Positions 19,800 through 64,000 are shown, counted from the stretch's first letter. The stretch: 64,000 bases of DNA from Marsupella aquatica (GCA_973895155.1 OZ316897.1:10191832-10255831); one strand, 5' to 3'. The notes: generated from the letters alone by a model not told the origin. Translations and numbers: made by a program.

Positions 19800-20640
19800 T
19801 ATGATGTTCACATGTACATGGTGTCTCGGGATAAGGATTATCCCCAACACAAAAGACAGTAAATTTTTAAAGGAAAAGGTAAAAGATGGGGTGTAGAGAC
19901 CCAAAGTCCTCCAAAGCCAATGGGTAGAAAAGATCCCTCGGGTACCTAGCTACATACACCTCCTTCATCTGTATGCCATGGCCATAGCATGGCCCTGGAC
20001 ATGGGCAGCATCAAAACATGAGTCCCACCTGTAGGATCAACAATGACCACGTCGCCAAGGGCCGGATGCCGGCCTGAGAAAGGACCAGGTCAGCTCGTTA
20101 TTGATCAGGAACACCATCCCAAGGAGGAAGCACATGGAGCTACTCCATAGTGACAGGGTATCTGGAGTCTCAAACAATGGCAGCCACCACATCATGGATG
20201 TCATCATGAGTTGTAGTCCTCTCACTACAGTGAGTGCACCGAAGAATATAGACTCCCTTGGGGGCCAGGGACACCCCACAGACACAAGTGGGTTGGCCAA
20301 GCTAGAGGCACAGGTGAGGGAGGCCAAGCCAAAGGCGTAGGGATGTGGTGAAAATGAAAGAGCTCATCCAGAAGGGGGCCCAAAGAGGACTAGCCGGGCG
20401 CCACACACCCAAACCTGAACAGTGCCGATGGTGAATCAGAGAGCATGCTAGAAGCTAGAAAGGGGGTAAGAGTGCATGCAATAATAATGTCCATAATAGT
20501 ATCACAAGGGAGAGGTTGGAGGTCCACAAAGAAACTAGATGCTAACATGGGAGCCATCTATCAATGCTAAACAACCCAGGCAAGACAGAGGAGGAGAAGA
20601 AGCAGCCATGGTGGCAACTACAAGGCTACAAGGCTAGTCT
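19800..20640 (-). mobile_element. Degenerate remnant of an RLE-type non-LTR retrotransposon (3' region); boundaries approximate
   Basis: The reverse strand shares blocks (TGTCTGTGG / TAGTGAGAGGACT / ATGACATCC / GCCATTG) with 49010-49140, which encodes a CCHC knuckle and restriction-like endonuclease. Confidence 0.55.
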
Positions 20641-42363: not shown

Positions 42364-44164
<1,801 letters not shown>

Positions 44165-46709: not shown

Positions 46710-48879
46710 TACTGTAAATTGAAATTGATTAAGTGCCACTGATTTTAGAAATTTTTACTGTGCTGTTATTTCTAATATTGTTTATTGAATGTCAATATTT
46801 TGACCCAAGACTGACTTGAGAGTTAATTTTCTTTGGATAAAAAACTGGATTAATTTTACTTTGCACCTCCTACAGACCAGGATTTTACTTAACCTCTGAT
46901 GTGTTCACTCCTTGTAAGTACCCTTCTACCTGTAATCATTTTCTGCTCTTTATACATACCCTCACCTCCATGTATGTACTACCTGCTGGCCATATGTTCT
47001 TCCTCACACTCCAAAGACTAACTCCATGTCACTCCCCATTAGTACCTCTCTTTCCATATGAAATGCCCCTCTCTGCTATGTCCATGGTGAAAGACATAGG
47101 GAGAGATGGGAGAAGTATCAATGGAGTAATGGGGAGAGTTTGTTTGTTGAGGGGTATGTACATAGGGGGAAGGAATGGAGTATGTATAGCACAATGGAGG
47201 TCTAGTGGGGATTACTGAAGTGCCCACTTGAATGTAACGGTTTACTGGAATGCCCACTGGAATGTAACGGGGAGACCAGTTTTGACAGGAAGTTGACTGG
47301 TGTTGCCGGGAAACTTTTTGGAGGAACAAGGGAACCCGGCCCTCGTAGATGCTTTCGATTCGGCTTTTGAAACCACTGTTACCATTTGTACATAAACTAG
47401 GGCTAAGGTCGGAGTTACCGGCTATAGTCAGTTCAGCCAATGCAAAGTGTTGTGTAGTCATCAAACAGTGAGATCATTGTCTGAGAAGATAGAGACAACA
47501 GAAACAGGAGAGGATCCATTCATCTTTGAATTCCATTGCTTGTAGTTTTGTTGCCATGCTCTTTAATTGTTGTCTCGGCTCCTGCGTTGTGTTGTTTGAG
47601 GAGACCAATTGCAAGGTTCTGTCTATTTCTTGCAAATCCCTCTCTTTCCTTGTGTTGGTATGTTAGGAGGCCAGTTGCATTGGAAGGGGCTGCCTATTTC
47701 TTGCAAATTTTGGAGTTTGAGATGGTGACATGTTGGATGATGGCCTCGGGAAGATTTGCACGTTGTGATATCTTTTTCACACAACAATTCCAATTAAAAT
47801 GGCATGGAGCAACTCACATCTCTGTAGTTTCTCAGTTATCTTTGATTCAGCTGGTTTGGGGGCATGCCCAGGTAGTTGGAAGATTGCACAGGGAGGTGGA
47901 GATGAGCCAGTGTCCAATGGTGGAGAAGATCGAAGTGAGAATATCACACAACTCATACTTTTAGTTGAACAACAGCTTGCAGAAGCCGATGGAGTCTTTT
48001 GCAGAGTATTCTGGATCTGATGGTTACCTTCAAAACATATAGTGGGGTGTTACTCCTTGCACGTAGATTTGGGAGCGGAGGGCGATTTGGGAACCTCTAT
48101 CCCCTCAATAGATCAAGAAACACAAGGATCATGGAGAGGCAAGAGTATCCAAGTTTTCAGCTAATGTCAATTGTAACCAGATGCTCAAGTGAACACTATC
48201 CATGACATTGACATTAAGTTGTTCCCAATAAAGCTTATTTTTCCTATTCCACCTTGTCCATTGTCAATTTGGTAATTCAATACAAAAACTAGGAGCAAAT
48301 CTTATATACAACGGATTTTTTTTACAAGTTAGCTAAATTCTTGACCTCATGATGCCTTCACAAAGCTCCTTCACCTTCTTGGTTTCCATACATGACACCA
48401 TAGGGTTCCCATTGAGACTTTAAAAGAATTTCTGATTCACACCAAATTTCAACAGTGAATAATCTGGATTTGGTGTGTTAACTAGGACACCTATCAATGA
48501 CAGATACATCACAACAAGCGAAAGAGAAGGTGCAAGAATAGGCTCAAGTCAGATGCACATGCGTTGACAGCAAGGAATGTTTAGACGACAGACCTTGCCA
48601 AGCAGAAAACCCACCCTCGCCTAAACTGTCTAATATTTCCCAATCTCAAGATTGTAAACTTTAGGAAAAATCTGCATTAGCTCAGTTGTCAAGCTACCTG
48701 CACCTGAGGCATGGGGCACTAAGTATGTGTAAGAGATCTTGCCAACCCAAGGAGAAAGACAAACTGCTAAATAAAGTGCAGAGACCTTTGAGCACACTCC
48801 AATCCCCAGTTGTAGATCCTAGTCTGATACTGTGAAAGAAATTGACAGAATATTTTACCTATAGTACATGAGTCTAGTG

Positions 48880-49830
48880 GGCGTTGGTTAGGGGGCCTGG
48901 CTATCGACTAGCCCACTGTGGGATCCCTTTCGTATGAGTTCTTTTATCTTCACCACATCCACGTGCCGTTGGCTGGGTCTCCCTCACCCTTGTCTCTTGG
49001 GTTAGCCTACATGCGTCTGTGGTGCGCCCCTAGATGGGCAGGGCATTCATATTCTCACATGTGGTCATGGTAGTGAGAGGACTGTGACACACAATGACAT
49101 CCGGGATCTGGAGGCAGCCATTGCTCATGACTCTAAGTACCTCTATGGGATGGGGTTTCTGATCATCATTGGGCAGATTTGATCTTCTCTTGTGCTGGAG
49201 TTCGTGCTATTGGGGATGTTGTTGTTTCTTATCCTACCAGTGGGGCCAATGTGGTTTCTGCTAGCTTTGTTCCACGCCACGCGGCTGCAAGGGCAGCTCG
49301 ACTTAAGGAGGAGGCCTATGCTATGCGATACCCTAAGGACCTCTTTTCTCTGTTTCCTATGGAGATCTTTGGGCCACTACACCCATCCTTTGACCATTTC
49401 CTATGTTCTTGCGCAGTTTAGTATGTTGAGCGAAGGCCTTATCCCCCGGTGTCTGTCATCACAACATTTTTTAGACCGAGGGTTCTGTTGTGCTTTAGCA
49501 AGCACATGTGTTCACTATTCTTTGTAGGGGTGAGGTTGTTGGTCTTAGGGCCTATAGTAGGATTCATTTGCTTGACTCTCCTATCAGGTTCACACCATAG
49601 CTCTACCAGGCTCTTCAGTTTGTCCAGTTCACACCAGAGCTCTACCAGGCTCTTCAGTTTGTCCATAGTAGATAGTGGTTTTTGGGTTTGCGGCATTTCT
49701 GTGTTTCTTGATCCTTTGGTTGTGCCCCTTTGATCGGGTCGTGTGCATAAGGGATCATGTGTCAGGTTAGGCACCCTTTGTTTTGCGCTTTGTTTTTGAC
49801 AGATTGATATATACTTTTCTCGTTACCATG
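48880..49830 (+). mobile_element. Degenerate RLE-type (CRE/R2-like) non-LTR retrotransposon 3' remnant
   Basis: Translates as CVCGAPLDGQGIHILTCGHGSERTVTHNDIRD (CCHC plus HN motif), then ADLIFS...IGDVVVSYPT...KEEAY...FPMEIFG (restriction-like endonuclease layout). Frameshifted. Confidence 0.68.
49588..49665 (+). repeat. 39-bp tandem duplication
   Basis: GTTCACACCA(T/G)AGCTCTACCAGGCTCTTCAGTTTGTCCA twice. Confidence 0.9.
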
Positions 49831-51715
49831 GCCTTTCATTTCGGATCGAGACCCACTCGACGTCATGAGAGCTATGTTTTGGTCGGCAGCATTAGCGTAA
49901 TGGCCAAAGCTCTCCTCACAAAATGGGGTAGAGTAGCACAGAGTGGGTCAGGAGAAAAGTCGGTCCAGGAGATAGGACTGGATCCAGTGAATGTGGTCGT
50001 GTTTTGCCTCCTGCCCAAGCTAGAGTGAGTACCTGACACCGATTCAACGAAAAGCTGATTGAGACGGAATTTGAGAACGCATTGAGCGAGTGCATGCCGT
50101 GCGATTCGGATTCAGATGCTGAGTTGATCGTTTCGCTCAAGAACCCAACCTATATAATGAGGAAATGGCTGGATTAATAATATCATAAGAGCGATTCAAA
50201 CTCCGCGTAGGAAACTTTTCTCGAAGCAACTCTCTCTGATTTGGAAGGAAATCGTGATCGAGGTTGCGCTCAGGTTTTGTCAAGAGCAGCGCGTGGTCAC
50301 TTGTTCCTGGTCCATTACAGATTGTGGGAATTTCGATGCGAGAGATTTGATGTCTGTTCGGGAGTAATCAGGTAAGCGCAATGTTTCTTCGAGTGTCATG
50401 TCCCCAACCTTCTTTTGAGGCAGTTCAGTTTGTCATGTCGTTCTCAAATCTAGACCAGACTTGATTCTGCAGTTTGTGGGGCAGTTTGCACAAGCTAGAA
50501 TCCCAATAGTGGACGTAGATTGAGCTGGCGAGCTGGTTAGTTACGACTGTAGCTTTTGGAATCTACAATATCTCTCTTTGTCCAACATACTATCCTGAGT
50601 GAATCTACAAGTGGGCGGAGATCAGTTTACGCTCCAGTAAGGTGACATCGATTTAGTTAGTTTGCTTTTTATGTGGATCACTGTATGACCAGGGAAGTTT
50701 GTCGTTTATTTTTAAGACTGGGTAGCAAATTAAGTTTTGTGCGTAATGTCAAATGAACGTGCTCTAAACTGGGCTATCGATCTGTAGTTTGCATACACTT
50801 GCAATTGAAACTCTAGTGTCTGACTTTGTGCATTAAGAAGTTTGTGTATTCTTCGACAATATGTAACTAATTTATGTAACTAATGATACATGTGCAAGAT
50901 TCCTCTATCCATATAATCTTGAGCACGTCTCGCTTCCTTTATTACACAGCTTTCACCTTTTGCAGACAGAATGCAGTCAGTCGTTCTCTAAACTGCCCCA
51001 CCTGACTGCAGTCTGGAAGAAGTTCTCGACACGGAGGCATACACTGATCTTCTATTGCGGTCCAATTTTGCAGAACTGTTACACTGGACCGAATAGCTGT
51101 GAGCATCGCAAGAACTCATCAGTGACATAATCAAGTTTTCATCATCGGCATACTTGCAGGCTCTGTGGGGGTTCCTGGAAGTTGCAATGCACCTCTAGAC
51201 AGAACAGAATCTTGATCTTGTCATTTGCGAGACACTGCTGTGCATCAATTCTCATCCTGAGAAGTTCGACATTCCACTACCATTTTAAAAGTCTTCTCCA
51301 ATGGCAATCCTTATATAATAGTTTCTCGAGATATTAGATCAATCAAGGTAACTTTAGAATGCCGGCATAGTCAGGATCCAGATACAATAGACTTGCTGTG
51401 ATCAAGCGCGCTGCAGTCTCTGGCGTAGTTGGCATACTCAACTTAGCTGTCAGTTGTGGACTGGGAATTTTCGCGGGGAACCCTTGTAGTAGACTGACAT
51501 ATATATAGTTGAGATCGAGCTGCAAGTGCCAACCTAGTGATCGAAGTGGTAGTCTAGCCATGGCTGAGCTCGAGCTACATCTAAGTTGCAGTTGAGGTCG
51601 AGCGCATTAGTATGGCTAAAGTTGAGCTCGAGCTGCAGCTTGAGATCTAACATATTGGTTGGGCTTAGTTAAGATTGAACGTAAGATCCCCGACAGCTGA
51701 AACAAGTTCATAAAC

Positions 51716-53285
51716 ATGTCCAAATTGACGGTCAGGAAGCTCACACCCGCCATCGGTGCGGTAGTGGAGGGTATTTCGCTAGCAGAGCCGTTGCAGGATG
51801 AGGAGATCGCGGCCATAAAGAATGCCCTCCTCGACAATCAGGTGATTTTCTTCCACAACCAGTCCATCAATCCGATTCAGCAGCAGGCCTTTGCCAAGCG
51901 GTTCGGCGAGCTTCATGTGCATCCTATCTACCCTGGCGTCTCCGATTTGCGGGACATTATGATCCTGGACACGGATGGAGACCATCCCCCGGACAACGAT
52001 AAGTGGCACACGGATGTCACCTTCATCGAGACCCCACCGTTGGGGACTATCCTCTCCGCCAAGCAGTTACCTCCCACGGGAGGGGACACGCTCTGGGCTA
52101 GCTGTAGCGCCGCCTACGAAGCGCTCTCGCCTCCAATTCAGGTGCGTCATGACAGTTTTCAAGTGGTGCTGAATTTAGAGCTTGATTCCTGGTCTCGTCC
52201 CCTTGTGCACTTAAAAATTTTTCGAAGACTCCTCTTGTTGTACAAGGGAAGGTTGTCATCGAGGTTATAAGTCTCCATAAAATGCAAAAAAGCTACCCCG
52301 ACCGAGACCAGCAGATGGGTGTTTTGAACATTATGAAAACTTTGACGAGTACCTTAATCGGTCGTTTGAACTTTCTGTGACATTCTGGTTGTCCTTCTAA
52401 GTTTTTCATGGATTTCCAACCTCTGTCGCTTCAGCAACTGGTCAGCATTGGTAAGGGGTTGCTTTCCTGGTTTGCATGCCTGGGGTCCTCTCGTTAGGTG
52501 GTTACTCCGCAGTATTTGTTAATGATTTCCATCCTTCGTGTTTCTGAAGTCATGTGCATTTTGTGCGAACTATCTCTAGAGTTGGTATCGATTACCAAAT
52601 ACCGGGAGCATCTACAGTAGGTTCCGAGAGCATCTAAGTTGTCCAGCACAACTCATCACTGAGACTTGTTTTCAACCCGGCACGTCATTTATAGAGTGCT
52701 GTGCATTTTCTCTGTTTGGCCTCGCGGAGTTTAGTGTCTTGAGTCCTCTGAGGACGTGTGATGCTCTGAACTCTTCCAAACTTCTCAGGTTTTTCATCTT
52801 TCTTACAGTTTGCATGAGATTTTAGCCGGTCCTTCGATTCATCCCGTGTTTGTCCAATTTCTGTAATCCAGACTCTCCTCCTTGGCCTGAAGGCGGAGCA
52901 TGATTTCCTGAAGTCCTTCCCGGCGCCGCGAGAATGGCGAGACTCATACGATCCGTTGGCACGCTGGGAGGAGGCGAGGAAGAATCATCCACCAGTGACC
53001 CATCCCGTCGTGAGAACGCATCCGGAGAGCGGTCGCAAGGGACTGTTTGTGAGTGCGGGCTTCACGACGCGAATCCTCGGGCTGCAGCAGGCGGAGAGCG
53101 ATGCATTGCTGAATTTCCTGTTCGCGCACCAGATCAAGCCCGAGTTCACTGTCCGCTGGACCTGGACTGTGAACGACCTCGCGTTCTGGGACAACCGCAT
53201 CACTCAGCACTACGCCGTGAACGATTACGTTCCCCATCGCCGGGTCATGCACCGTGCCACAGTCCTCGGAGACAACCCATTTTGA
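51716..53285 (+). CDS. tauD: Alpha-ketoglutarate-dependent taurine/sulfonate dioxygenase (TauD/TfdA family), 279 aa; exons 51716-52141 and 52872-53285
   Basis: [29 protein letters not shown] (HxD), [14 protein letters not shown] and [24 protein letters not shown] motifs. The phase-0 GT-AG intron 52142-52871 joins the two ORFs in frame. Confidence 0.93.
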
Positions 53286-53499
53286 AAGGCCAAAGTTCAA
53301 TCTTACTAATAAATCGCTTCACTCTAGGTACTCTTCGAGATTTATTATCGAATCAAATTTATCTCCATTGAAAGTAGGCCTATGTATTTGAACAAAACTG
53401 AGCACACATGATGACAAAAGTCGTCATTTCAATTCAGATTCAATGAATGGCTAGTAACAATAAGTTACAGCTAGTGCTCAAATCTATCTGATTTGTATT

Positions 53500-53810
53500 T
53501 GCTTTTCACCAGCCTCGATAGTGAGTTATGGGCATCGCATATGATCAATTACACAAGTGGTCAAATATATCTGGTTTGTATTTTTTTTGACTAGCCTCTA
53601 TAGTGACTTATGGTCATGGCATATGACCAATTGGTATGACAAAAAGTTATGGATTACTAGTTTGGTAGTCCATAACTTTCTCTATCCATAACCTTAACTT
53701 AGTAGGTAAGGTCCATCAAGTTCTGAGAATTGAGACCCCTCAAAGCTCTATCCAAAACCTTAACTTAGTAGTTAAGGTCCATCAAGTTTTGAGATTTGAG
53801 ACCCCCCAAA
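53500..53810 (-). mobile_element. Tourist-like MITE fragment with internal tandem duplications
   Basis: Ends in TTTGAGACCCC. Its reverse complement aligns with 57059-57215. Contains a 66-bp duplication at 53680-53820. Confidence 0.5.
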
Positions 53811-53900
53811 GCTCTATCCAAAGCTAGAGTGAAGCCTTAGTTACTGTCTACAGAGTGAAGCCTCTTGACCCCGACCCTCCTGCATAGCAGGAAGCAAATT

Positions 53901-54232
53901 TATCCATCTAATAAAGCTTTCTCAAAAGCTCAAGTAAAGGCTTAGTGTCTAGAGGAGTAAAACCTCTAGACTGCAACTCTTGGGCATAACCAGAAACAAA
54001 TACATCTAATAAGGTTTTATTGAAAGCTCGAGTAAGTACTTACCATCTACAGTGAAGCCTTTAGACTATCCATCTAATAAAGCTTTTTCAAAAGCTCAAG
54101 TAAAGGCTTAGAGTCTAGAGGAGTAAAACCTCTAGACTGCAACTCTTGGGCATAACCGGAAACAAATACATCTAATAAGGTTTTATTGAAAGCTCGAGTA
54201 AGTACTTACCATCTACAGTGAAGCCTTTAGAC
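53901..54232 (+). repeat. 166-bp tandem duplication within a degenerate array extending to ~54345
   Basis: TATCCATCTAATAAAGCTTT...GTGAAGCCTTTAGAC starts at 53901 and at 54067. Confidence 0.9.
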
Positions 54233-55770
54233 CGCAACTCTTGGGCATAGCTGGAACCAAATACATCTAATATTGAAAGCTAGAGTAAGAGTTTGCCGGC
54301 CAGAGTGAAGCCTCTAGACTATGACTCTAGGGCACAGCTGGAAATGGGCACCAAGACTCACCATGTATCTATAGCATTGAGGCCAGTCTGAGAAATAGGT
54401 GGAGGTATACTTTACCAATTTGTAGACCCATTTACGAGGGACATCTTTATTGGGTTGCAAATCTAAGGAGACCTTCCCCAGTGGGGTCTCTTCAGGTGTA
54501 ATTTGCCCAATAAGTATGCTACCACACTTGTGATGAGGATTGACATCATCCTATATATACGCCAAAGGTTGTGGTGGGAATGACCTGAGTTATTAACACC
54601 TGTTTTGGAAACTAAGTTTTTGTTTGTTTTAAAAGGACCACGTCACTCAAATGGGCCAATCAAAGTACAATGGGAGTTTGTTTTGGAGACAACATAAAAA
54701 TGACAGAGGACCAGTTTACTCAAAAGGGCTTGGTCTGACAAAGTACAATGATGTAAAAGCAAAAGAAGCCCAGACAGGCCAAAAACCAAACGAAGAGGGC
54801 AAATGAAAAACACCAAAAACCTAGAAAAAGAAAGAAATCTACCATTGCGAGAGTGCAATGATCTGATATTGCAACTACTGAAACAAAGATGTCCTGAATG
54901 CACTAATACCCATTCTTAGAGATCCCCAAAACCATTCTATCAGGTTACATTGAGGCAAGTCCACACTAGTATCCACTGTTACAGATCCAACAAAATTTTG
55001 TTTTCGATGAGGAATTTACAAGAAGCTGAAGTACAAAAGCATGGGGAGCAAAAATGATTAGATACACGTTGCTGAAAAATACTTCTCTCCTTCCATGGGC
55101 ATAAGGCATAGAAGTTAGAGGCAAGTCGCTCCTGAGGCACCCTAGTGCACACTTCAAGAGATCAAAAGAATATTGTTTCAGATTAGATTTCTCCTTTGCC
55201 TAAAGGACCACTCTCTTCCTTGGGCATAAGTTTATAGGCATTGAGGGTAGCAGGGAAGAAGTACTCAAACATCATTAACTCTTATGAGGGAGAGTTGCCT
55301 ACTAGGTAAATAGTTCCTATCTAGCTAGGTTAGTAGGTAGTAGGAACAATCATGGACCTACCAGAACTTATTGTTTCCTTCTTGGACAGTAGCTTCATTC
55401 AAAGATGAAAAGTACCAGGAAAGTAGGTGACACAGAGAGTCGCTGGTAAACAATACTATTGTTGGGTCAATCAGTCATTTCTTAGTCTCCTGATTTTCAA
55501 TTTACCAACTAAAAGGATCTTTGATATTGGATGCGCTGGGCAGAGCATGTAAGGTGACAAGAAAGACTCACGCGTAGAATGGGAACTACTGTCAATTGTA
55601 CTTCTCACTTGGCTTATATTTTCTAACCTCGCATGTTCAGCCAAGGTACGCGGACCACCATTTGTATCGATTTGAGTGTGACGAGAAACGCTCACTTATC
55701 CTCGTAGTTGGTCATCAGGTAGAAAGCCAATCCAATCCCAATCTTCAGTCTTTCTTGCCTTGAAAACATG

Positions 55771-57332: not shown

Positions 57333-57860
57333 AATCAGGTAATACGTCCAGATTTCTTGCTAAAAATTAATTACGAAAATATAATGGAAGTTCCCAGATT
57401 GTGTAAAACAATAGTAGTTCCAAAGGCACCCTCAAGTTTCATAAAGAATGTTAAATTAGCCATGGAAATTGTTTGTGGTCAAAAATTCATACAGACACGA
57501 AGTAGGGGTTCGACAGGAAAGTCGTTTCGATTCAATAAATTCGTAGTAAATCAGGAGTCCAAGAGAGACACAGGATATGTCACTCACCTAGCACGAAGCA
57601 CTCTACGAGGGCATATCATGTATAATTTTTTGGAAAAACTTGTTACAATAATATCCTTCTACGATTATCCGGTCAAAATACGTAAAAACTCCATTCAATT
57701 ATCAATGGCAACGTCGTTGTTACGATTATTTCCCGAAATACAGGATCATTTCGAGATTTTCGAGCATATTCGAGGGTTTGATGTAACTATTGTCACTTCA
57801 GCTAACACACAAGATGAGACTGTAATTTTGTGGAGTGGCTTTTTGCAAAAAGAGGTTTAG
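57333..57860 (+). pseudogene. rpl5: Mitochondrial rpl5, 5'-truncated at the insertion junction
   Basis: Reads [23 protein letters not shown]...[17 protein letters not shown]. The native start codon is missing upstream. Confidence 0.88.
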
Positions 57861-57864
57861 TCAT

Positions 57865-59059
57865 ATGTCAAATAAAATTATGCGGGATCACAAACGTAGA
57901 TTGCTTGTGGCTAAATATGAATTGAAACGAATGTATTACAAAGCCATTTGTCAAGATAGAAATCTTCCTAATAAGATAGTGCGACCTGTTCACAGGTCAA
58001 GACGTTGAGTCACGCCTGTGCGCTCTATTCCGCATTCATCCACACCCGGATGGCGGAGCAAGTGAACTGAGTTTCCATGAAGGTGAAAGTCCTTCTCCCT
58101 TGAGAACAGGGTAACAGCGTACCCACATGCGTTTGGAGTGGCATCCAAAGGTGTGAAGCTGGGTAGAAAAGGGATGAAGAACCCGGAAATTTTAAAGCAA
58201 GCCTTTTCCGCAGTCTTCGCTCCCCCGCGGGGATAAGCGAGTTTCGCCCCTTAGGAAGTGGGGAACGAATAATCTCTAGCAAGGGCGTGACAAATACCCT
58301 TTGTTGGGTATTGTCCGGGTGAATACTACAGGGTGGTTATTCTACCTACGAAGGCTAATTACTGAACCGTAGCATCTGAAGCGTCGTAATAGGAAAGCGG
58401 GGTGGTATTGCTTCCTACTGACCCCCCGCCGCGTCCGGAATATCAGACAGAGGCCCAGGGAAAGGTATTTTCTGCCCTTTCCCGTTCTTTCAGTGCGCCT
58501 CCGGCGTAGAGCGGGAGCCTTACGGCCCAATCCAAAAGGATGAATGGAATCTCGGAACTGTGTAATCCTGCGCACCTCTGAGCTTGAACTCAGGCGGGCT
58601 AACTTCATGGTGTGTAGGATTGGGATAGGGCAAAAAGCTAAAAAAAACTTTTTTTTGCCCGGTTGTTACGATCGGGATATGCTAAAGTGTCCATGCATCC
58701 CAAGGGATGAAAGAGCAGTCAACATATATGCTTCAAAATCGAGGATGAGAGACACAACGTCTCTTTAAGTCGTAATAATTTATCAATCTGGGTGCAAGGA
58801 GCCGTATGATAGGAGACTATCACGTACGGTTTTGAATCAGGGGCGTCAGAGGAAATTCCACGTCTACTGTAACCGTTATGAATATTTTTCTAAGTTGTCT
58901 AAGTTGCCAAGAAATAGTTCCAAAACACGAGTAAGAAACCGGTGTATTTTCACAGGGCGCCCTCGTTCCGTATATAAGTTATTTCGCATTTCTCGTATAG
59001 TTTTTCGTGAATTAGCTTCTAAAGGTTCTTTGATAGGCATAAACAAATCGTGTTGGTAG
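57865..59059 (+). CDS. rps14: Mitochondrial rps14 (exons 57865-57978 and 58874-59059), NUMT copy
   Basis: MSNKIMRDHKRR...LPNKI | RYEY...LPRNSSKTRVRNRCIFTGRPRSVY. 99 codons after splicing. Confidence 0.93.
57979..58873 (+). ncRNA. Group II intron in rps14 (rps14i114 type), no ORF
   Basis: 5' GTGCG exactly after nt 114. Domain V GAGCCGTATGATAGGAGACTATCACGTACGGTT at ~58799. 3' end ...AAC. Confidence 0.93.
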
Positions 59060-59559
59060 CCAATAAAAGAAAAGGTTAGCTCTTCGAGGAGTACCTATAT
59101 ATAGGTCTTCCTCCACTGCCTCCCAACCTGCCAAGTATACGAGGCGCTCATAAAATGAAATACGTTTTTTCCCTCGCTTATGATTCGAACATTTGGTTAC
59201 TACACGCTGAACTTTCTCCAGGTAGAATCTAATAGCTAAATTGGGAATGTAGCGAAAAACAACAAATATTTTTCCGAACCCTGCGGCCGCCAAAGGCACG
59301 AGACCTAATAGGTGGGAGGAGTGCCCGAAGTCTTCTAAAAATGGCTTAGAAAGAAGGCGAGAGTGCCCGAAGGGCCCGCGACTGACGAAAAACGCTTTTT
59401 TCGGGCACGGGACTATAGGGAGGGTTGAAACCACCAATTTAGATATATGTCTCTTAATAAGGAATAAATCAAATGTCTCTTAATAAGGAATAAATCGAAC
59501 GCCCCGCGAGGCGCGAAGTGCTGTTCGAATCGAAAAAATAGAAAAAAAATATTCTTTTT

Positions 59560-60018
59560 ATGCATACATTAAGTAATCTTTTATCCGGTATAAAAAATGC
59601 GCAAAAAGCTCAAAAGCGTGTTCTTTATTTTTCCTCCTTCAAAAAAATAAGCGAGAGAAAAAAACGCTTTGTCTGCTCCGCTTGTAAAATTACCCCTCGC
59701 GTTTTCGTTTCGCGTCTTTGTTGGGATTTTTGCAGAATTCTGTACGATGAGGGTTATATCCACGGATTCTCTCAGGAAGCAGACGGAAGCTTGAGAATAG
59801 TCTTGAAGTATCATTTTTCTGGAATGGGTGTAATGAAAAAGATGGAAACAATATCTAAACCAGGTTTTCGGATTTATTCATCAAAAAATCGTTTATCAAA
59901 AAAAAGGGAAGGACTTGGTATAACCATCTTATCCACTTCAAGGGGAAATTTGATATGTGATCGTGAAGCACAAAAAACCAATTTTGGTGGCGGTGAGATT
60001 CTCTGCCAAGTTTTTTAA
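59560..60018 (+). CDS. rps8: Mitochondrial ribosomal protein S8 (NUMT copy)
   Basis: IKNAQ, EGYI, ISKPGFRIY, ILSTSRG and GGGEILC motifs. Confidence 0.93.
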   Translation: MHTLSNLLSGIKNAQKAQKRVLYFSSFKKISERKKRFVCSACKITPRVFVSRLCWDFCRILYDEGYIHGFSQEADGSLRIVLKYHFSGMGVMKKMETISKPGFRIYSSKNRLSKKREGLGITILSTSRGNLICDREAQKTNFGGGEILCQVF

Positions 60019-60036
60019 AAAAATAAAGTAAAGTTT

Positions 60037-60342
60037 ATGGAAGCCAAATTCTTTTGTTTTTTGGAAATAATTGGAGTTGGATATAAAGCCAGTACTAACG
60101 CACAAGGCTCTATTTTATATTTGAAATTAGGATTTAGTCATGAGATTCGACTTCAAGTTCCACCTTCAGTTCGCGTTTTTTGCTTAAAGCCTAATCTTAT
60201 TTGTTGTACCGGAATGGATCATCAAAAAGTCACTCAATTTGCTGCCATTGTCAAAAGTTGTAAACCTCCCGAAGTTTATAAAGGGAGGGGTATACAATAT
60301 CGGAACGAAATTATACATAAAAAACAAGGGAAAAATAAATAA
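60037..60342 (+). CDS. rpl6: Mitochondrial ribosomal protein L6 (NUMT copy)
   Basis: GVGYKA, LKLGFSH and KPPEVYKGRGI motifs. Confidence 0.94.
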   Translation: MEAKFFCFLEIIGVGYKASTNAQGSILYLKLGFSHEIRLQVPPSVRVFCLKPNLICCTGMDHQKVTQFAAIVKSCKPPEVYKGRGIQYRNEIIHKKQGKNK

Positions 60343-60345
60343 ATC

Positions 60346-60708
60346 ATGTCATATATTTTAGGAACCAATCTGAATTCCAATAAACAGGTGAAAATTGCCT
60401 TAACCCGAATCTTCGGAATTGGGCCTAAAAAGGCAATTCAAGTTTGTGATCGATTAGGCCTCAGCGATAACATTAAGGTTAATAAGTTAACTAAATATCA
60501 ATTTGACCAAATTATAGAAATAATAAGTCAAAATTATTTAGTCGATTCGGAATTGGAGAGAGTCATTCAGAGGGACATCAAACGATTAATTAGTATTGGT
60601 TGTTATCGCGGGTTTCGCCATAATGCAGGATTGCCCTTACGCGGCCAACGGACTCATACTAATGCTAAGACTTCTCGCAAATTGAGATACATTTCGATCA
60701 GAAGTTGA
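60346..60708 (+). CDS. rps13: Mitochondrial ribosomal protein S13 (NUMT copy)
   Basis: IFGIG and YRGFRH..GLPLRGQRTHTNAKT motifs. Confidence 0.95.
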   Translation: MSYILGTNLNSNKQVKIALTRIFGIGPKKAIQVCDRLGLSDNIKVNKLTKYQFDQIIEIISQNYLVDSELERVIQRDIKRLISIGCYRGFRHNAGLPLRGQRTHTNAKTSRKLRYISIRS

Positions 60709-60826
60709 GAAAAGTTTTTTTCCAGTTCGTACAAAATATCTCTGTAATTGGTGAACGAATTGGATGGATCATAAAAAAACGAAATCGATGATATCGAGCA
60801 ACACCAAAAACATTCAATAAACAATC

Positions 60827-61204
60827 ATGCAGGAAAAGCACGGTATTACTAATATGCAAAAAAAACACTGTATTACTTATATTCAATCAACTTTTGGTAA
60901 TACAATTATTACTTTAACGGATTATGACGGAAATACAAAAACTTGGTCCCCCTCGGGTTCAGTGGGGTTTAAGGGATCTCGTCGCTCAACCAATTATGCT
61001 GCTCAAGCAACCGCAGAAAATGCCGCGCGAGCTGCCATTCAACTTGGATTTAAGTTTGTTGAAGTGAGAATCAAAGGATTGGGTTATGGAAAGGAATCTT
61101 CGCTACGTGGTTTAAAACCAGGAGGTCTTATTATTACCAAAATTCGCGATGTAACCCCAACACCACATAATGGATGCCGACCCCCTAAAAAACGTCGTGT
61201 TTAA
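60827..61204 (+). CDS. rps11: Mitochondrial ribosomal protein S11 (NUMT copy)
   Basis: [12 protein letters not shown] and [18 protein letters not shown] motifs. Confidence 0.95.
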
Positions 61205-61870
61205 ATATCATCATAAAGTGCTATGTCATCATAAAATGGTAAATTGAGGTTCAAGAGCAGAAACAATTTTTTTAGGGTCCGAGGGAGACTTCTTTGGGAT
61301 ACTTCTTTGGCTTCACGGGGCTTAACCCGTCCTTCGTAAAGGCGGAGAAGGAAATCTACAAGCCATGTCTGGCCTTCGGCGGCCCTTCGGACCCACAAAG
61401 TGCGTAGCACTTCTATCTATAGTATCGCGCCCTCGGGCCGATAGGGTTCGGGCTTTAGCCGATACCGGAGTGTCTCCAGCCGGGCCGACGCCGGGAAAGG
61501 GCCGGAAACAAATAAAAATTTATATATATTTTTTTTCTCTCGTTCTATGCCCTATGGGGGTGGCCTGCGGCTTACGGCTGCACGGTTATCTCAGGTTCTC
61601 TAAAATGAGAATGATAGAGCTTGGGTCGTTTTCGTTCCCGGACTGAACGAGTCTCGTCGACTTCAGGCCTATTCAACTGGGATGGTTCCAAGTCGAAATA
61701 CGGGAAGGCTCGGCGCAGCACAAATAAATAATTTTGTTCTCCCCCTAGCAATTAATTACTATGCCCTAAAGGCCTCATGAAACTGATTATGAGGGCACTG
61801 CTTAGTCCGAAGGCCCTTATAAGCAAACGAATTGGGTGACAGAAGTACTGAAAAAGGAAAAGGAATAAAA

Positions 61871-62650
61871 ATGAGCTTTAGTCAATTATTTCCCAAATAT
61901 AATTCTAGTTTTAATCCATTACGTGGGAGTGCTATACAATGTTCAGTGATACAATTACAACAAAACAAGGTCTTGGTGGATACGGGACTGAAAACTCCAA
62001 TAATTTGTTTCCAACATGAACTGGAGAAAGTGCCAATCACCAAGCAAGCAAGGTTTAATTTTGGAATTGAAGATGTAGAAGTGTTTGGTGAACCAAAGAT
62101 GCTTCTGCCGAAACCATTAGAAATAAGATGTAAAGGAAAACTAGTTTGGATTGAACTCACCAAGATTTGGCGAAGTGACCAAAATTTGGTCAAAGGATTT
62201 ATTTTGAATTCAGTGAAAGGAGGTTATGCTGTAGCAATCGCAGGGTATATAGCTTTTCTCCCCAAGAGTCTTCTCAAAAGTAGAAAAGTATTTTATAGTC
62301 AATGGAGAATATTCTCCATTTTGAACATGAAACCAGAAATCAGTAATATCGTGGTAAAAGAGATTGGTGATGGCAAAATAGATTATTTTTCGACGCCAAG
62401 ATCGCATCAGGAACGAACAAAGCATTTAGGCGCGAAGCTAAAACACCGGCGAGACGTGGAGAGGAACACGAACGTCAAGAAAAAAAATATTTTTTCCGAG
62501 AAAGTTCCTACGACCAAAAGGACCAAACAGAGCTTCAAGCATTTAGGCCCAAAGCCTCCTCTCACCCATACCGAGAAAAAACGTGAAACTACTAAACAAC
62601 CCACCAAAAATAACGTATTTCGACTCAAAGACCAAGGCCGGGGCAAATAA
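61871..62650 (+). CDS. rps1: Mitochondrial ribosomal protein S1 (NUMT copy)
   Basis: ATG at 61871 (MSFSQLFPKY); VLVDTGLK and VKGGYAVAIAGYIAFLPKS motifs. Confidence 0.9.
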   Translation: MSFSQLFPKYNSSFNPLRGSAIQCSVIQLQQNKVLVDTGLKTPIICFQHELEKVPITKQARFNFGIEDVEVFGEPKMLLPKPLEIRCKGKLVWIELTKIWRSDQNLVKGFILNSVKGGYAVAIAGYIAFLPKSLLKSRKVFYSQWRIFSILNMKPEISNIVVKEIGDGKIDYFSTPRSHQERTKHLGAKLKHRRDVERNTNVKKKNIFSEKVPTTKRTKQSFKHLGPKPPLTHTEKKRETTKQPTKNNVFRLKDQGRGK

Positions 62651-63147
62651 TTAGTTTTTGTTGGTGCGTTAACGCGGTTAAAAACTAGATGCGAAGAGGG
62701 GATGTCACGCAAATAATCCAGTAGTGCGACTACAAGCGATGTCTCATCGCCCCAAGCCTCAGGTAATGCGGGGGGGTATGCCCACATGTATACTCAGGAC
62801 CTCAGTAATGAAAAGGGGAGGTTGCCTGCGGCCCTTTAGCTAATCACTGAAAAATTATTTTCTTTGCGTTTCCGGCCGGCTTTAAAATTTCCGGCCCATG
62901 GCGGAGTACTAGGTTTCGGGCGGGTCCTTTGCGAAGCGAATAAAAGCTCTGCTTTTTCGTTCTGGCCCGATACAGGCATGATTCCCCCGTGTCCTTCGGA
63001 CCCAGACTACGCGCATGGCCTCGGATGATAAAATAATTATCCCCCACCCAGAACGACTCAGAGCGCAAATAAAGTATATATTTTATTTGGCTGGGCGGAG
63101 CGCGATTCAATAAGTATTGGAATCGGTAAAAAAAAAAGTGGAAAAAA

Positions 63148-63666
63148 ATGCCTCAACTAGATCAATTTACGTATTTGACACAATTCGTTTGGTTATGCGT
63201 GTTTTATATGACTTTTTATGTATTATTATATAATGATGGATTACCCAAAATAAGTCGAATTATCAAACTAAGAAAACGACTGGTATCGCAGGAAAAAGTA
63301 GGCGCGAAGCAGAGCAATGACCGTGTAGAACAGGATGTGGTTTTCAAAGAATGTTTTCAAGCCAGTGCAAACTATCTGTACTCAAGTGTATCCGGAGCAT
63401 CTAAGTGGTGTAAAGGAATGGTCCAACTCGCAAATACTAATAAATTGCAACGAATGAATAAAGATTATGTATCTTCTTTGGGAGAGATTAGTGTATCACA
63501 AGTGATCAAAAAGAACGCACTTTCAACCCTGAGTCCTTCTACTTATCAAACAACTTTTCTAGCTTCACGTCAAACCACCGCTCTTAACAAAATCTATGTT
63601 TTACGCGGGCAAAAGAGAACTCTGGCGAAGATAAAGAACGGACCGAGAAAAAAAAAAAATTCATGA
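63148..63666 (+). CDS. atp8: Mitochondrial ATP synthase subunit 8 (NUMT copy)
   Basis: MPQLDQFTYLTQFVWLC N-terminus; 172 aa. Confidence 0.94.
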   Translation: MPQLDQFTYLTQFVWLCVFYMTFYVLLYNDGLPKISRIIKLRKRLVSQEKVGAKQSNDRVEQDVVFKECFQASANYLYSSVSGASKWCKGMVQLANTNKLQRMNKDYVSSLGEISVSQVIKKNALSTLSPSTYQTTFLASRQTTALNKIYVLRGQKRTLAKIKNGPRKKKNS

Positions 63667-63696
63667 GATGTAACGAAGAAGGGGAAAGGAAAAAAA

Positions 63697-63916
63697 ATGT
63701 TATGTAGAACTAACGCCCTACATCTCCGGCCTCAACTAGATCAATTTACGTATTTGACACAATTCATTCGGTTATGTTTGGTTCATATTACTCCCCATTT
63801 CGTCTTATATTCAGTATTGGTTTTTACCAATACTGAATGGCCGCCCTGTATCCTACTGAGAAAACGACTGGTACCGCAGGAAAAAGTAGGCGCGTAGCAG
63901 AGCAATGACTGTGTAG
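63697..63916 (+). pseudogene. Degenerate partial duplicate of the atp8 5' region
   Basis: CCTCAACTAGATCAATTTACGTATTTGACACAATTC and AGAAAACGACTGGTA.CGCAGGAAAAAGTAGGCGCG are repeated from 63150-63330. Stop at 63895. Confidence 0.85.
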
Positions 63917-64000
63917 GGCGGAATGTTCTCACGAGTGAACCAAGTAGGTCCGGGAGTTGGATAGCTCTAAATTTAGTGTACCCGACTTCCATTCGCTCCT

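Follow-up and report, generated by a model that had tools for sequence, protein, structure and literature searches.

The closest described systems are the taurine dioxygenases (TauD) of Escherichia coli (solved structures 1gqw and 1os7) and Pseudomonas putida (3pvj), proteins of 283 and 277 aa, respectively, with a His-Asp-His triad, a threonine and an arginine for 2-oxoglutarate and a taurine pocket. The roles of the E. coli residues in binding iron, 2-oxoglutarate and, in the case of R270, the sulfonate are taken here to be established structural knowledge. In bacteria, tauD is the last gene of a tauABCD operon, and two bacterial relatives of the gene described below (L002 and L003) have the tau transporter genes beside it; this adjacency is customary among bacterial tauD genes and no requirement for the enzyme family. 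TauD-family enzymes with similar pockets may favour other sulfonates. Much of the sulfur in soil is present as sulfonates, and plants are generally held to depend on microbes for freeing it. In the green lineage, the TAUD1 gene of Chlamydomonas reinhardtii is annotated with the same reaction; one study reports that its transcript increases under nitric-oxide treatment and links this rise to sulfur availability (PMC8374494). For transferred genes, the main text of a bryophyte survey counts 1,809 bacteria-to-plant transfer families and places 90 events on the ancestral embryophyte (PMC12513842).

The gene compared here with these systems lies in a 64-kb stretch of DNA from the liverwort Marsupella aquatica, hereafter the window, with the following features:

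42743-44164: alpha-tubulin gene, upstream of TauD and 7.5 kb away
49817..51715, + strand: upstream region, aligning patchily with the upstream region of the Calypogeia fissa orthologue (blastn, L004 and L005)
51716..52141, + strand: TauD exon 1, 142 codons (sequence and translation, Pfam, structure alignments)
52142..52871, + strand: TauD intron, 730 nt, phase 0, GT...AG, spliceosomal-type
52872..53285, + strand: TauD exon 2, 137 codons plus TGA
53308..53313, + strand: AATAAA hexamer, 23 nt past the stop codon, read from the sequence
57357 to the window end: chromosomal insertion of mitochondrial DNA, downstream of TauD

Translated as two pieces, the exons together give a complete TauD of 279 aa. 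The sequence-only reading, an earlier annotation of this DNA, had described precisely such a two-exon frame with a 730-bp phase-0 GT-AG intron, and the sequence and its translations bear this model out. The intron begins with GTGCGT, ends with CCAG and has a GC content of 44%; the exons have 57-60% GC, and the GC-rich codons claimed in that reading are reflected in a GC3 of 0.73 for TauD versus 0.62 in the tubulin exon. An in-frame TGA is located 18 nt 5' of the ATG, which is the first one after this stop, so that TauD carries no N-terminal extension, again as claimed, and the 279-aa product is probably cytosolic given the lack of a targeting extension. The unspliced reading frame terminates at 52270. 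As this stop would deprive the protein of its third iron ligand and of the arginine for 2-oxoglutarate, TauD can only be functional if spliced. A search for a second copy of the intron within the 64-kb window returned none, and its interpretation as a repeated element was discarded. Downstream of the coding region, the AATAAA hexamer is a possible polyadenylation signal, a motif of weak evidential value.

The two exons were compared separately with family profiles and solved structures. For Pfam PF02668 (TauD), which has a gathering cut-off of 27 bits, exon 1 matches profile positions 2-142 (109.5 bits, 3.7e-31) and exon 2 matches positions 149-267 of 267 (111.4 bits, 9.2e-32), a full-length match above the gathering score that places the protein in the TauD/TfdA family. 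Since these spans follow one another along the profile, the TauD halves abut with no part missing, and the exon junction lies precisely at the abutment. The taurine dioxygenase equivalog NF007104 of NCBIfam gave 207.1 bits for exon 1 (profile 3-143) and 217.2 bits for exon 2 (145-279); its cut-off of 313 bits refers to the whole protein, and the separately scored exons reach 424 as a simple sum. Among solved structures (HMMER), the best matches are E. coli TauD (1gqw; exon 1 7.5e-51, exon 2 1.4e-54) and P. putida TauD (3pvj; exon 1 6.4e-46, exon 2 5.4e-57), with AtsK alkylsulfatase, phenoxypropionate dioxygenases and other family members far weaker. With these two enzymes, each half shares about 60% of its residues, and the end-to-end alignment contains one single-residue length difference.

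All 17 catalytic and pocket residues that were checked through the 1gqw alignments are identical (E. coli numbering: H70, Y73, D94, N95, W98, H99, D101, V102, T126, S158, F159, F206, W240, W248, H255, R266 and R270). In the liverwort protein, exon 1 provides H69/Y72 (E. coli H70/Y73), D93/N94 (D94/N95), H98 (H99), D100 (D101) and T125 (T126), and exon 2, counted from its own first residue, provides S15/F16 (S158/F159), F64 (F206), H113 (H255), R124 (R266) and R128 (R270). The 2-His-1-carboxylate iron triad is hence made up of H98 and D100 from exon 1 and H113 from exon 2, the equivalents of the 2-oxoglutarate-binding Thr126 and Arg266 are T125 and R124, and the taurine pocket is identical at eight of eight positions (H70, Y73, N95, V102, S158, F159, F206 and R270), in all of which the protein resembles the E. 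coli and P. putida enzymes. Each of the iron, 2-oxoglutarate and taurine-pocket residues that the sequence-only reading had listed has its counterpart, and the motifs it named are all real. By sequence, the gene would accordingly encode a taurine dioxygenase proper and more than a mere family member. The fold was judged by proxy, using the C. fissa protein P0174, which is 92% identical over exon 1 (142 aa) and 90% identical over exon 2. The Atlas model of P0174 (pTM 0.92) superposes on a cluster of bacterial taurine dioxygenases with a TM score of 0.97, and the window's protein is therefore predicted through this proxy to adopt the double-stranded beta-helix fold of TauD.

Relatives were collected in three homology searches of annotated genomes, each examined by its best 120 of several thousand matches, and in a further exhaustive representative search with exon 2, which agreed with them. 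In the word-based search, the exon 1 query was the uninterrupted 184-codon frame at 51716-52267, of which only residues 1-142 were scored. The closest protein among the matches listed is P0174 from the leafy liverwort C. fissa, an unnamed product of 279 aa whose gene model, to which this comparison refers, has the same exon junction as the window's TauD. Three TauD copies are present in C. fissa, and copies from this species are 86-92% identical to the window's exon 1. After Calypogeia, the matches listed continue with the lycophyte Diphasiastrum complanatum (two genes, O6H91_11G000700/001000, on a 63-Mb chromosome) and the moss Ceratodon purpureus (two genes whose locus tags lie close together, on a chromosome of 18 Mb; records M758_6G134800/135000 and KC19_6G140200), whose proteins of about 280 aa are 64-69% identical to exon 1. 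These are followed by hundreds of proteobacterial taurine dioxygenases, led by the Chitinibacteraceae Chitinimonas, Silvimonas, Jeongeupia and Andreprevotia (Betaproteobacteria, Neisseriales; 58-68% identical to exon 1). Additional relatives were found on eukaryote-like contigs. The gene structures of the plant copies are as follows:

Ceratodon (L001): intronless, flanked by an amino-acid transporter gene on one side and a DUF3067 gene on the other
Diphasiastrum (L006), lycophyte-like contigs (L008, L009) and a moss-like contig of 235 kb (L011): all intronless
C. fissa copy A (L004): 1072-nt intron, positioned as in the window, with GTG as donor and CAG as acceptor
C. fissa copy B (L005): 1073-nt intron with this position, donor and acceptor; the frame is broken in exon 2
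Liverwort-like ENA contig (L010): 885-nt intron, also with this position, donor and acceptor; 77-80% identical
C. fissa paralogue P0293 (L007): two introns, neither of them at the position used in the window

The amino-acid transporter gene beside the Ceratodon TauD is no evidence on uptake.

The window's TauD gene is nuclear and part of the plant chromosome. The sequence-only reading had placed plant-type genes and MITEs on both sides of it. The first part of this description stands upstream, where the alpha-tubulin gene is located, and fails downstream, where the neighbouring DNA is inserted mitochondrial sequence in which tRNA genes were looked for and none were found. The MITEs were not borne out, as the flanks were found to hold short arrays of tandem repeats, at 51504-51640 and 53465-54343, and no terminal inverted repeats that convince; a motif of approximately 21 nt (repeat family D6) occurs in three copies at 51504-51637, inside the upstream region. 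Compared with the window, the DNA of the C. fissa locus aligns over both exons, over part of the intron and in patches across about 2 kb upstream, and 49817-51715 is likely to contain the promoter and 5' UTR. The C. fissa contigs with alignable upstream DNA and intron measure 11.3 Mb and 8.0 Mb, the P0174 orthologue being located on the larger one. Synteny downstream of TauD was sought with C. fissa and L010, and none was detected. A host gene next to the candidate and an orthologous locus in a related host, the chromosomal evidence looked for in a horizontally transferred gene, were thus both found. Because the gene belongs to a real plant chromosome, contamination is ruled out, in agreement with the earlier argument from the intron; the introns, the chromosomal flanks and the orthologous locus in C. 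fissa all speak against it. ABC transporter genes (tauABC) are absent from the vicinity of TauD in the window. Unlike bacterial tauD, the liverwort gene is a stand-alone nuclear gene with a spliceosomal-type intron, and since it lies outside a tauABCD operon, its regulation and the entry of its substrate must differ from those in bacteria.

The spliced frame is under strong purifying selection, with a dN/dS of about 0.1. With the counts made for each exon and added up, dN/dS comes to 0.096 for the comparison with copy A of C. fissa (dS 0.53, dN 0.051) and to 0.077 for that with L010, a comparison in which dS is saturated, and the splice signals are preserved in every liverwort copy. The earlier claim that the gene was kept intact is consistent with these values, and the selection indirectly suggests that TauD is expressed and used. 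The same evidence bears on whether TauD might be a relic that is not transcribed, or an artefact of assembly or contamination. Copies can decay, as illustrated by the frame break in exon 2 of C. fissa copy B, but the window's frame is intact and constrained over a dS of 0.53, its GT-AG intron has been conserved across three sources or more, its upstream DNA is orthologous with that of C. fissa, and the gene lies between the tubulin gene and other chromosomal DNA within one window. A relic or artefact is consequently regarded as very improbable.

The origin of the gene was addressed with two IQ-TREE trees (LG+C20+F+G4) of 69 and 73 rows, in which the window's exons were entered as separate rows. 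In both, the plant sequences form one clade, with support of 100/99 for 16 plant rows and 100/95 for the 18 plant rows that include P0293. This clade is nested within proteobacterial clades (95/86 and 87/96), so that supported nesting in the tree of a donor group was recovered and the bacterial type of the captured gene, proposed from the sequence, is upheld by two trees. The enclosing clade holds Chitinimonas, Silvimonas, Jeongeupia, Uliginosibacterium and Enterobacterales, that is, beta- and gammaproteobacteria, and the plant clade shares a polytomy with Chitinibacteraceae, Enterobacterales, Uliginosibacterium and a Steroidobacteraceae sequence. With the Chitinibacteraceae as the nearest named bacteria in the same supported clade, a Chitinibacteraceae-like donor may be considered a lead rather than an established result.

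Within the plant clade, P0293 branches basally, followed by the intron-bearing liverwort group (100/100) and then by lycophytes plus mosses (97/93). The sequence-only reading had proposed that the liverwort itself acquired the gene. A recent capture specific to liverworts would fit the strong likeness to bacterial TauD and the GC-rich codons. It is at odds with the moss and lycophyte nuclear genes that fall in the same clade in both trees, with the divergence of the liverwort copies, which are separated by dS values from 0.5 to more than 1.6 and have an old intron in common, and with the second, deeply diverged liverwort paralogue P0293. Both trees reject a liverwort-specific transfer, whose probability is accordingly set very low. 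As all plant copies form one clade with the nuclear genes of Ceratodon and Diphasiastrum, the nearest relatives outside liverworts, the transfer most likely took place before the bryophyte/vascular plant split and the gene would be of vertical descent in this liverwort. TauD is hence not a liverwort novelty, given that the gene in mosses and clubmosses most likely goes back to the same old gain from bacteria.

The reading that we consider probable is that the window contains a functional nuclear TauD gene derived from a proteobacterial tauD by one early land-plant transfer, followed by vertical descent, losses and an intron gain in liverworts. In this scenario, the tauD gene of a proteobacterium would have entered an early land-plant ancestor once, at or before the bryophyte/vascular plant split, a timing that we infer as the most likely one. 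Vertical descent would have kept it in part of the liverworts (this genome and others of the Calypogeia group), in mosses that include Ceratodon and in lycophytes that include Diphasiastrum, with apparent loss from most other plants; an old duplication within liverworts would have been followed there by intron gains.

One old transfer demands many losses, given the very patchy distribution, and this patchiness is also an argument for several transfers, in which liverworts, mosses and lycophytes, and perhaps P0293 separately, would have gained tauD from closely related, sparsely sampled bacteria, or in which a single plant lineage would have gained it and handed it on to the others from plant to plant. 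Identities between plant lineages (65-72%) are no higher than those to Chitinimonas (65-68%), and P0293 finds its best match, at 67%, in Chitinimonas naiadis, the plant copies all being less similar to it (60-64%). The gene tree moreover pairs lycophytes with mosses instead of liverworts with mosses, in conflict with the species tree, the liverwort branch is long (0.35), and the main text of the bryophyte survey reports frequent, ongoing transfers (PMC12513842). Against this stand the single plant clade, which contains no bacteria despite hundreds of close bacterial matches, and the length differences in the loop after the S158/F159 equivalents, which the plant copies have in common when compared with the nearest bacteria. 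The conflict with the species tree also carries less weight in view of the AU test, which does not reject a tree keeping liverworts and mosses together (p-AU 0.142). Several transfers are therefore judged unlikely, and a single early transfer is preferred.

An origin older than land plants was also considered, in which a green-algal or streptophyte-algal ancestor already had the gene, as a native or an acquired one, and passed it on vertically. It draws on the Chlamydomonas genes annotated as taurine dioxygenase, for example TAUD1 (PMC8374494), and on the composition of the trees, which were built without algal sequences from searches seen through the best 120 of thousands of matches each. Among these best 120 matches of each search, no algal protein occurs, TAUD1 included, yet hundreds of proteobacterial ones do. 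Similarly, proteins of Marchantia, Physcomitrium, hornworts, ferns and seed plants are not found among the best 120 matches of each search, and neither are those of any eukaryotes besides liverworts, mosses and lycophytes; an absence of the gene from other plants and from algae is weakly supported. The plant clade is furthermore placed deep within beta- and gammaproteobacterial TauD at short distances to the Chitinibacteraceae, and the moss and lycophyte copies are intronless, all of which makes an algal origin improbable. Of the vertically inherited green-algal and plant clade that the sequence-only reading had set against its own proposal, the plant part was recovered, while no algal member was seen. 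The evidence continues to favour a bacterial gene that entered an early land plant.

The history of the intron can be followed more closely. Bacterial, moss and lycophyte proteins align without gaps across the TauD junction, and the ancestral gene was certainly intronless. An intron at the window's site is present in four liverwort copies (the window, L004, L005 and L010), and the window's intron can be partly aligned with those of C. fissa at 68-69% identity. The intronless relatives have CAG at the position equivalent to the insertion site, CAG being a typical site of intron insertion. Since the moss and lycophyte genes lack the intron and the intronless relatives retain this CAG, a later gain, after the transfer and within liverworts, is the supported interpretation, and the corresponding claim of the earlier reading appears to hold. 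The phase-0 intron would have been inserted at a CAG, with codon 142 on one side and codon 143 on the other, at a time when this genome had not yet split from C. fissa and from the more distant liverwort source represented by L010. The Ceratodon and Diphasiastrum genes thus differ from the window's gene by the lack of any intron, and one C. fissa paralogue differs by two introns at other sites.

Expression, splicing, substrate and a role in sulfur nutrition are predictions, the scavenging role being derived from the conserved residues. In the proposed reaction, H98, D100 and the H255 equivalent would bind Fe(II), and T125 and the R266 equivalent would bind 2-oxoglutarate. The enzyme would then hydroxylate C1 of taurine, or of a close aliphatic sulfonate, as its predicted substrate, and the hydroxylated product would break into sulfite and aminoacetaldehyde, with succinate and CO2 also formed. 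The sulfite could enter the plant's ordinary sulfite reductase pathway and be assimilated. Without an attached transporter gene, uptake of the substrate would require a host carrier.

With regard to the literature, the public records of the plant TauD proteins are deposited as hypothetical or unnamed proteins, and no published discussion of them was found. The searchable main texts do not name TauD as a transferred gene in land plants or bryophytes, although a listing in supplementary tables is possible (PMC12513842), and Yue et al. (2012) do not mention it. In the survey, the catalogued bryophyte transfers are likewise genes with few or no introns, surrounded by host genes on large scaffolds, accessory and patchy in distribution (PMC12513842). 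TauD would accordingly represent a new, or at least undiscussed, case among the catalogued bacterial genes of bryophyte genomes. As bacteria-to-bryophyte transfers have been catalogued by the hundreds, it adds a clear biochemical prediction and no new principle.

It may be tentatively proposed that early land plants obtained an organosulfonate-desulfonating enzyme of their own from a soil or freshwater betaproteobacterium, and that scattered lineages, represented by a leafy liverwort, Ceratodon and a clubmoss, continue to take sulfur directly from taurine-like sulfonates. If true, a plant-encoded TauD whose taurine pocket is fully conserved, and which strong purifying selection has retained in three deep lineages of land plants, would let plants convert sulfonate to sulfite directly. 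Axenic culture is possible for Ceratodon and liverworts, and tauD mutants are available in E. coli. The liverwort copies would, if this history is correct, preserve an event of intron gain that can be dated, in a gene that began intronless, and the family offers a clean, small case of such gains: one liverwort paralogue has gained one intron and another has gained two elsewhere.

Besides the two copies that carry an intron at the window's site (copy A, locus L004, and copy B, locus L005), Calypogeia fissa has a third, deeply diverged TauD copy, the paralogue P0293. The TauD loci of C. fissa and of the moss Ceratodon purpureus contain the following features:

L007:10001-12742, C. fissa 20.2-Mb contig, TauD paralogue P0293 (327-aa model)
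L005:11509-11894, C. fissa 8.0-Mb contig, frame break in exon 2 of the second TauD copy
L001:993-6843, C. purpureus chromosome, TauD gene and adjoining amino-acid transporter gene (Aa_trans)

Two introns interrupt P0293, neither of them at a position matching that of the window's TauD intron, and the window's site is without an intron in this paralogue. Among the matches listed for P0293, Chitinimonas naiadis (67%) ranks first, ahead of every plant copy. The second C. fissa copy is probably decaying: residues ~20-33 of its exon 2 are missing between frames, and its annotation is a shortened product of 234 aa.

C. purpureus carries two TauD genes on one chromosome, with closely numbered locus tags (M758_6G134800 and M758_6G135000), and at L001 the amino-acid transporter gene lies immediately upstream of TauD. 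The lycophyte Diphasiastrum likewise has two copies with closely numbered locus tags (O6H91_11G000700 and O6H91_11G001000), ~0.23 Mb from a chromosome end.

In the window itself, the TauD gene is accompanied by the following features:

19828-20418 and 48868-49500, coding-like repeated element, two copies in opposite orientations
42743-44164, + strand, alpha-tubulin gene (N-terminal exon ORF 42743-43015; large exon 43151-44164)
51504-51640, 21-nt motif, three copies at 55-58 nt spacing, just 5' of the TauD start codon
53465-54343, tandemly repeated arrays (periods 82, 66, 166 and 87 nt), just 3' of the TauD gene
57357-64000 (window end), mitochondrial-type DNA

The sequence-only reading had placed MITEs on both sides of the TauD gene; the repeats found there are motif copies on the 5' side and tandem arrays on the 3' side, and are not demonstrable as MITEs. 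The coding-like element is probably a transposon fragment; a further copy lies upstream of C. fissa copy B (L005:1921-2584), matching at 45-71% identity in translated comparison.

Within the mitochondrial-type stretch, open frames for rpl5, a piece of rps14, rps8, rpl6, rps13, rps11, an rps1-like ORF and YMF19/atp8 follow one another in the gene order of liverwort mitochondrial DNA, and no tRNA genes were found. This stretch looks like mitochondrial DNA that was recently inserted into the nuclear genome, or else like a join made during assembly. The alpha-tubulin gene, with at least one intron, is a plant-type neighbour of TauD.
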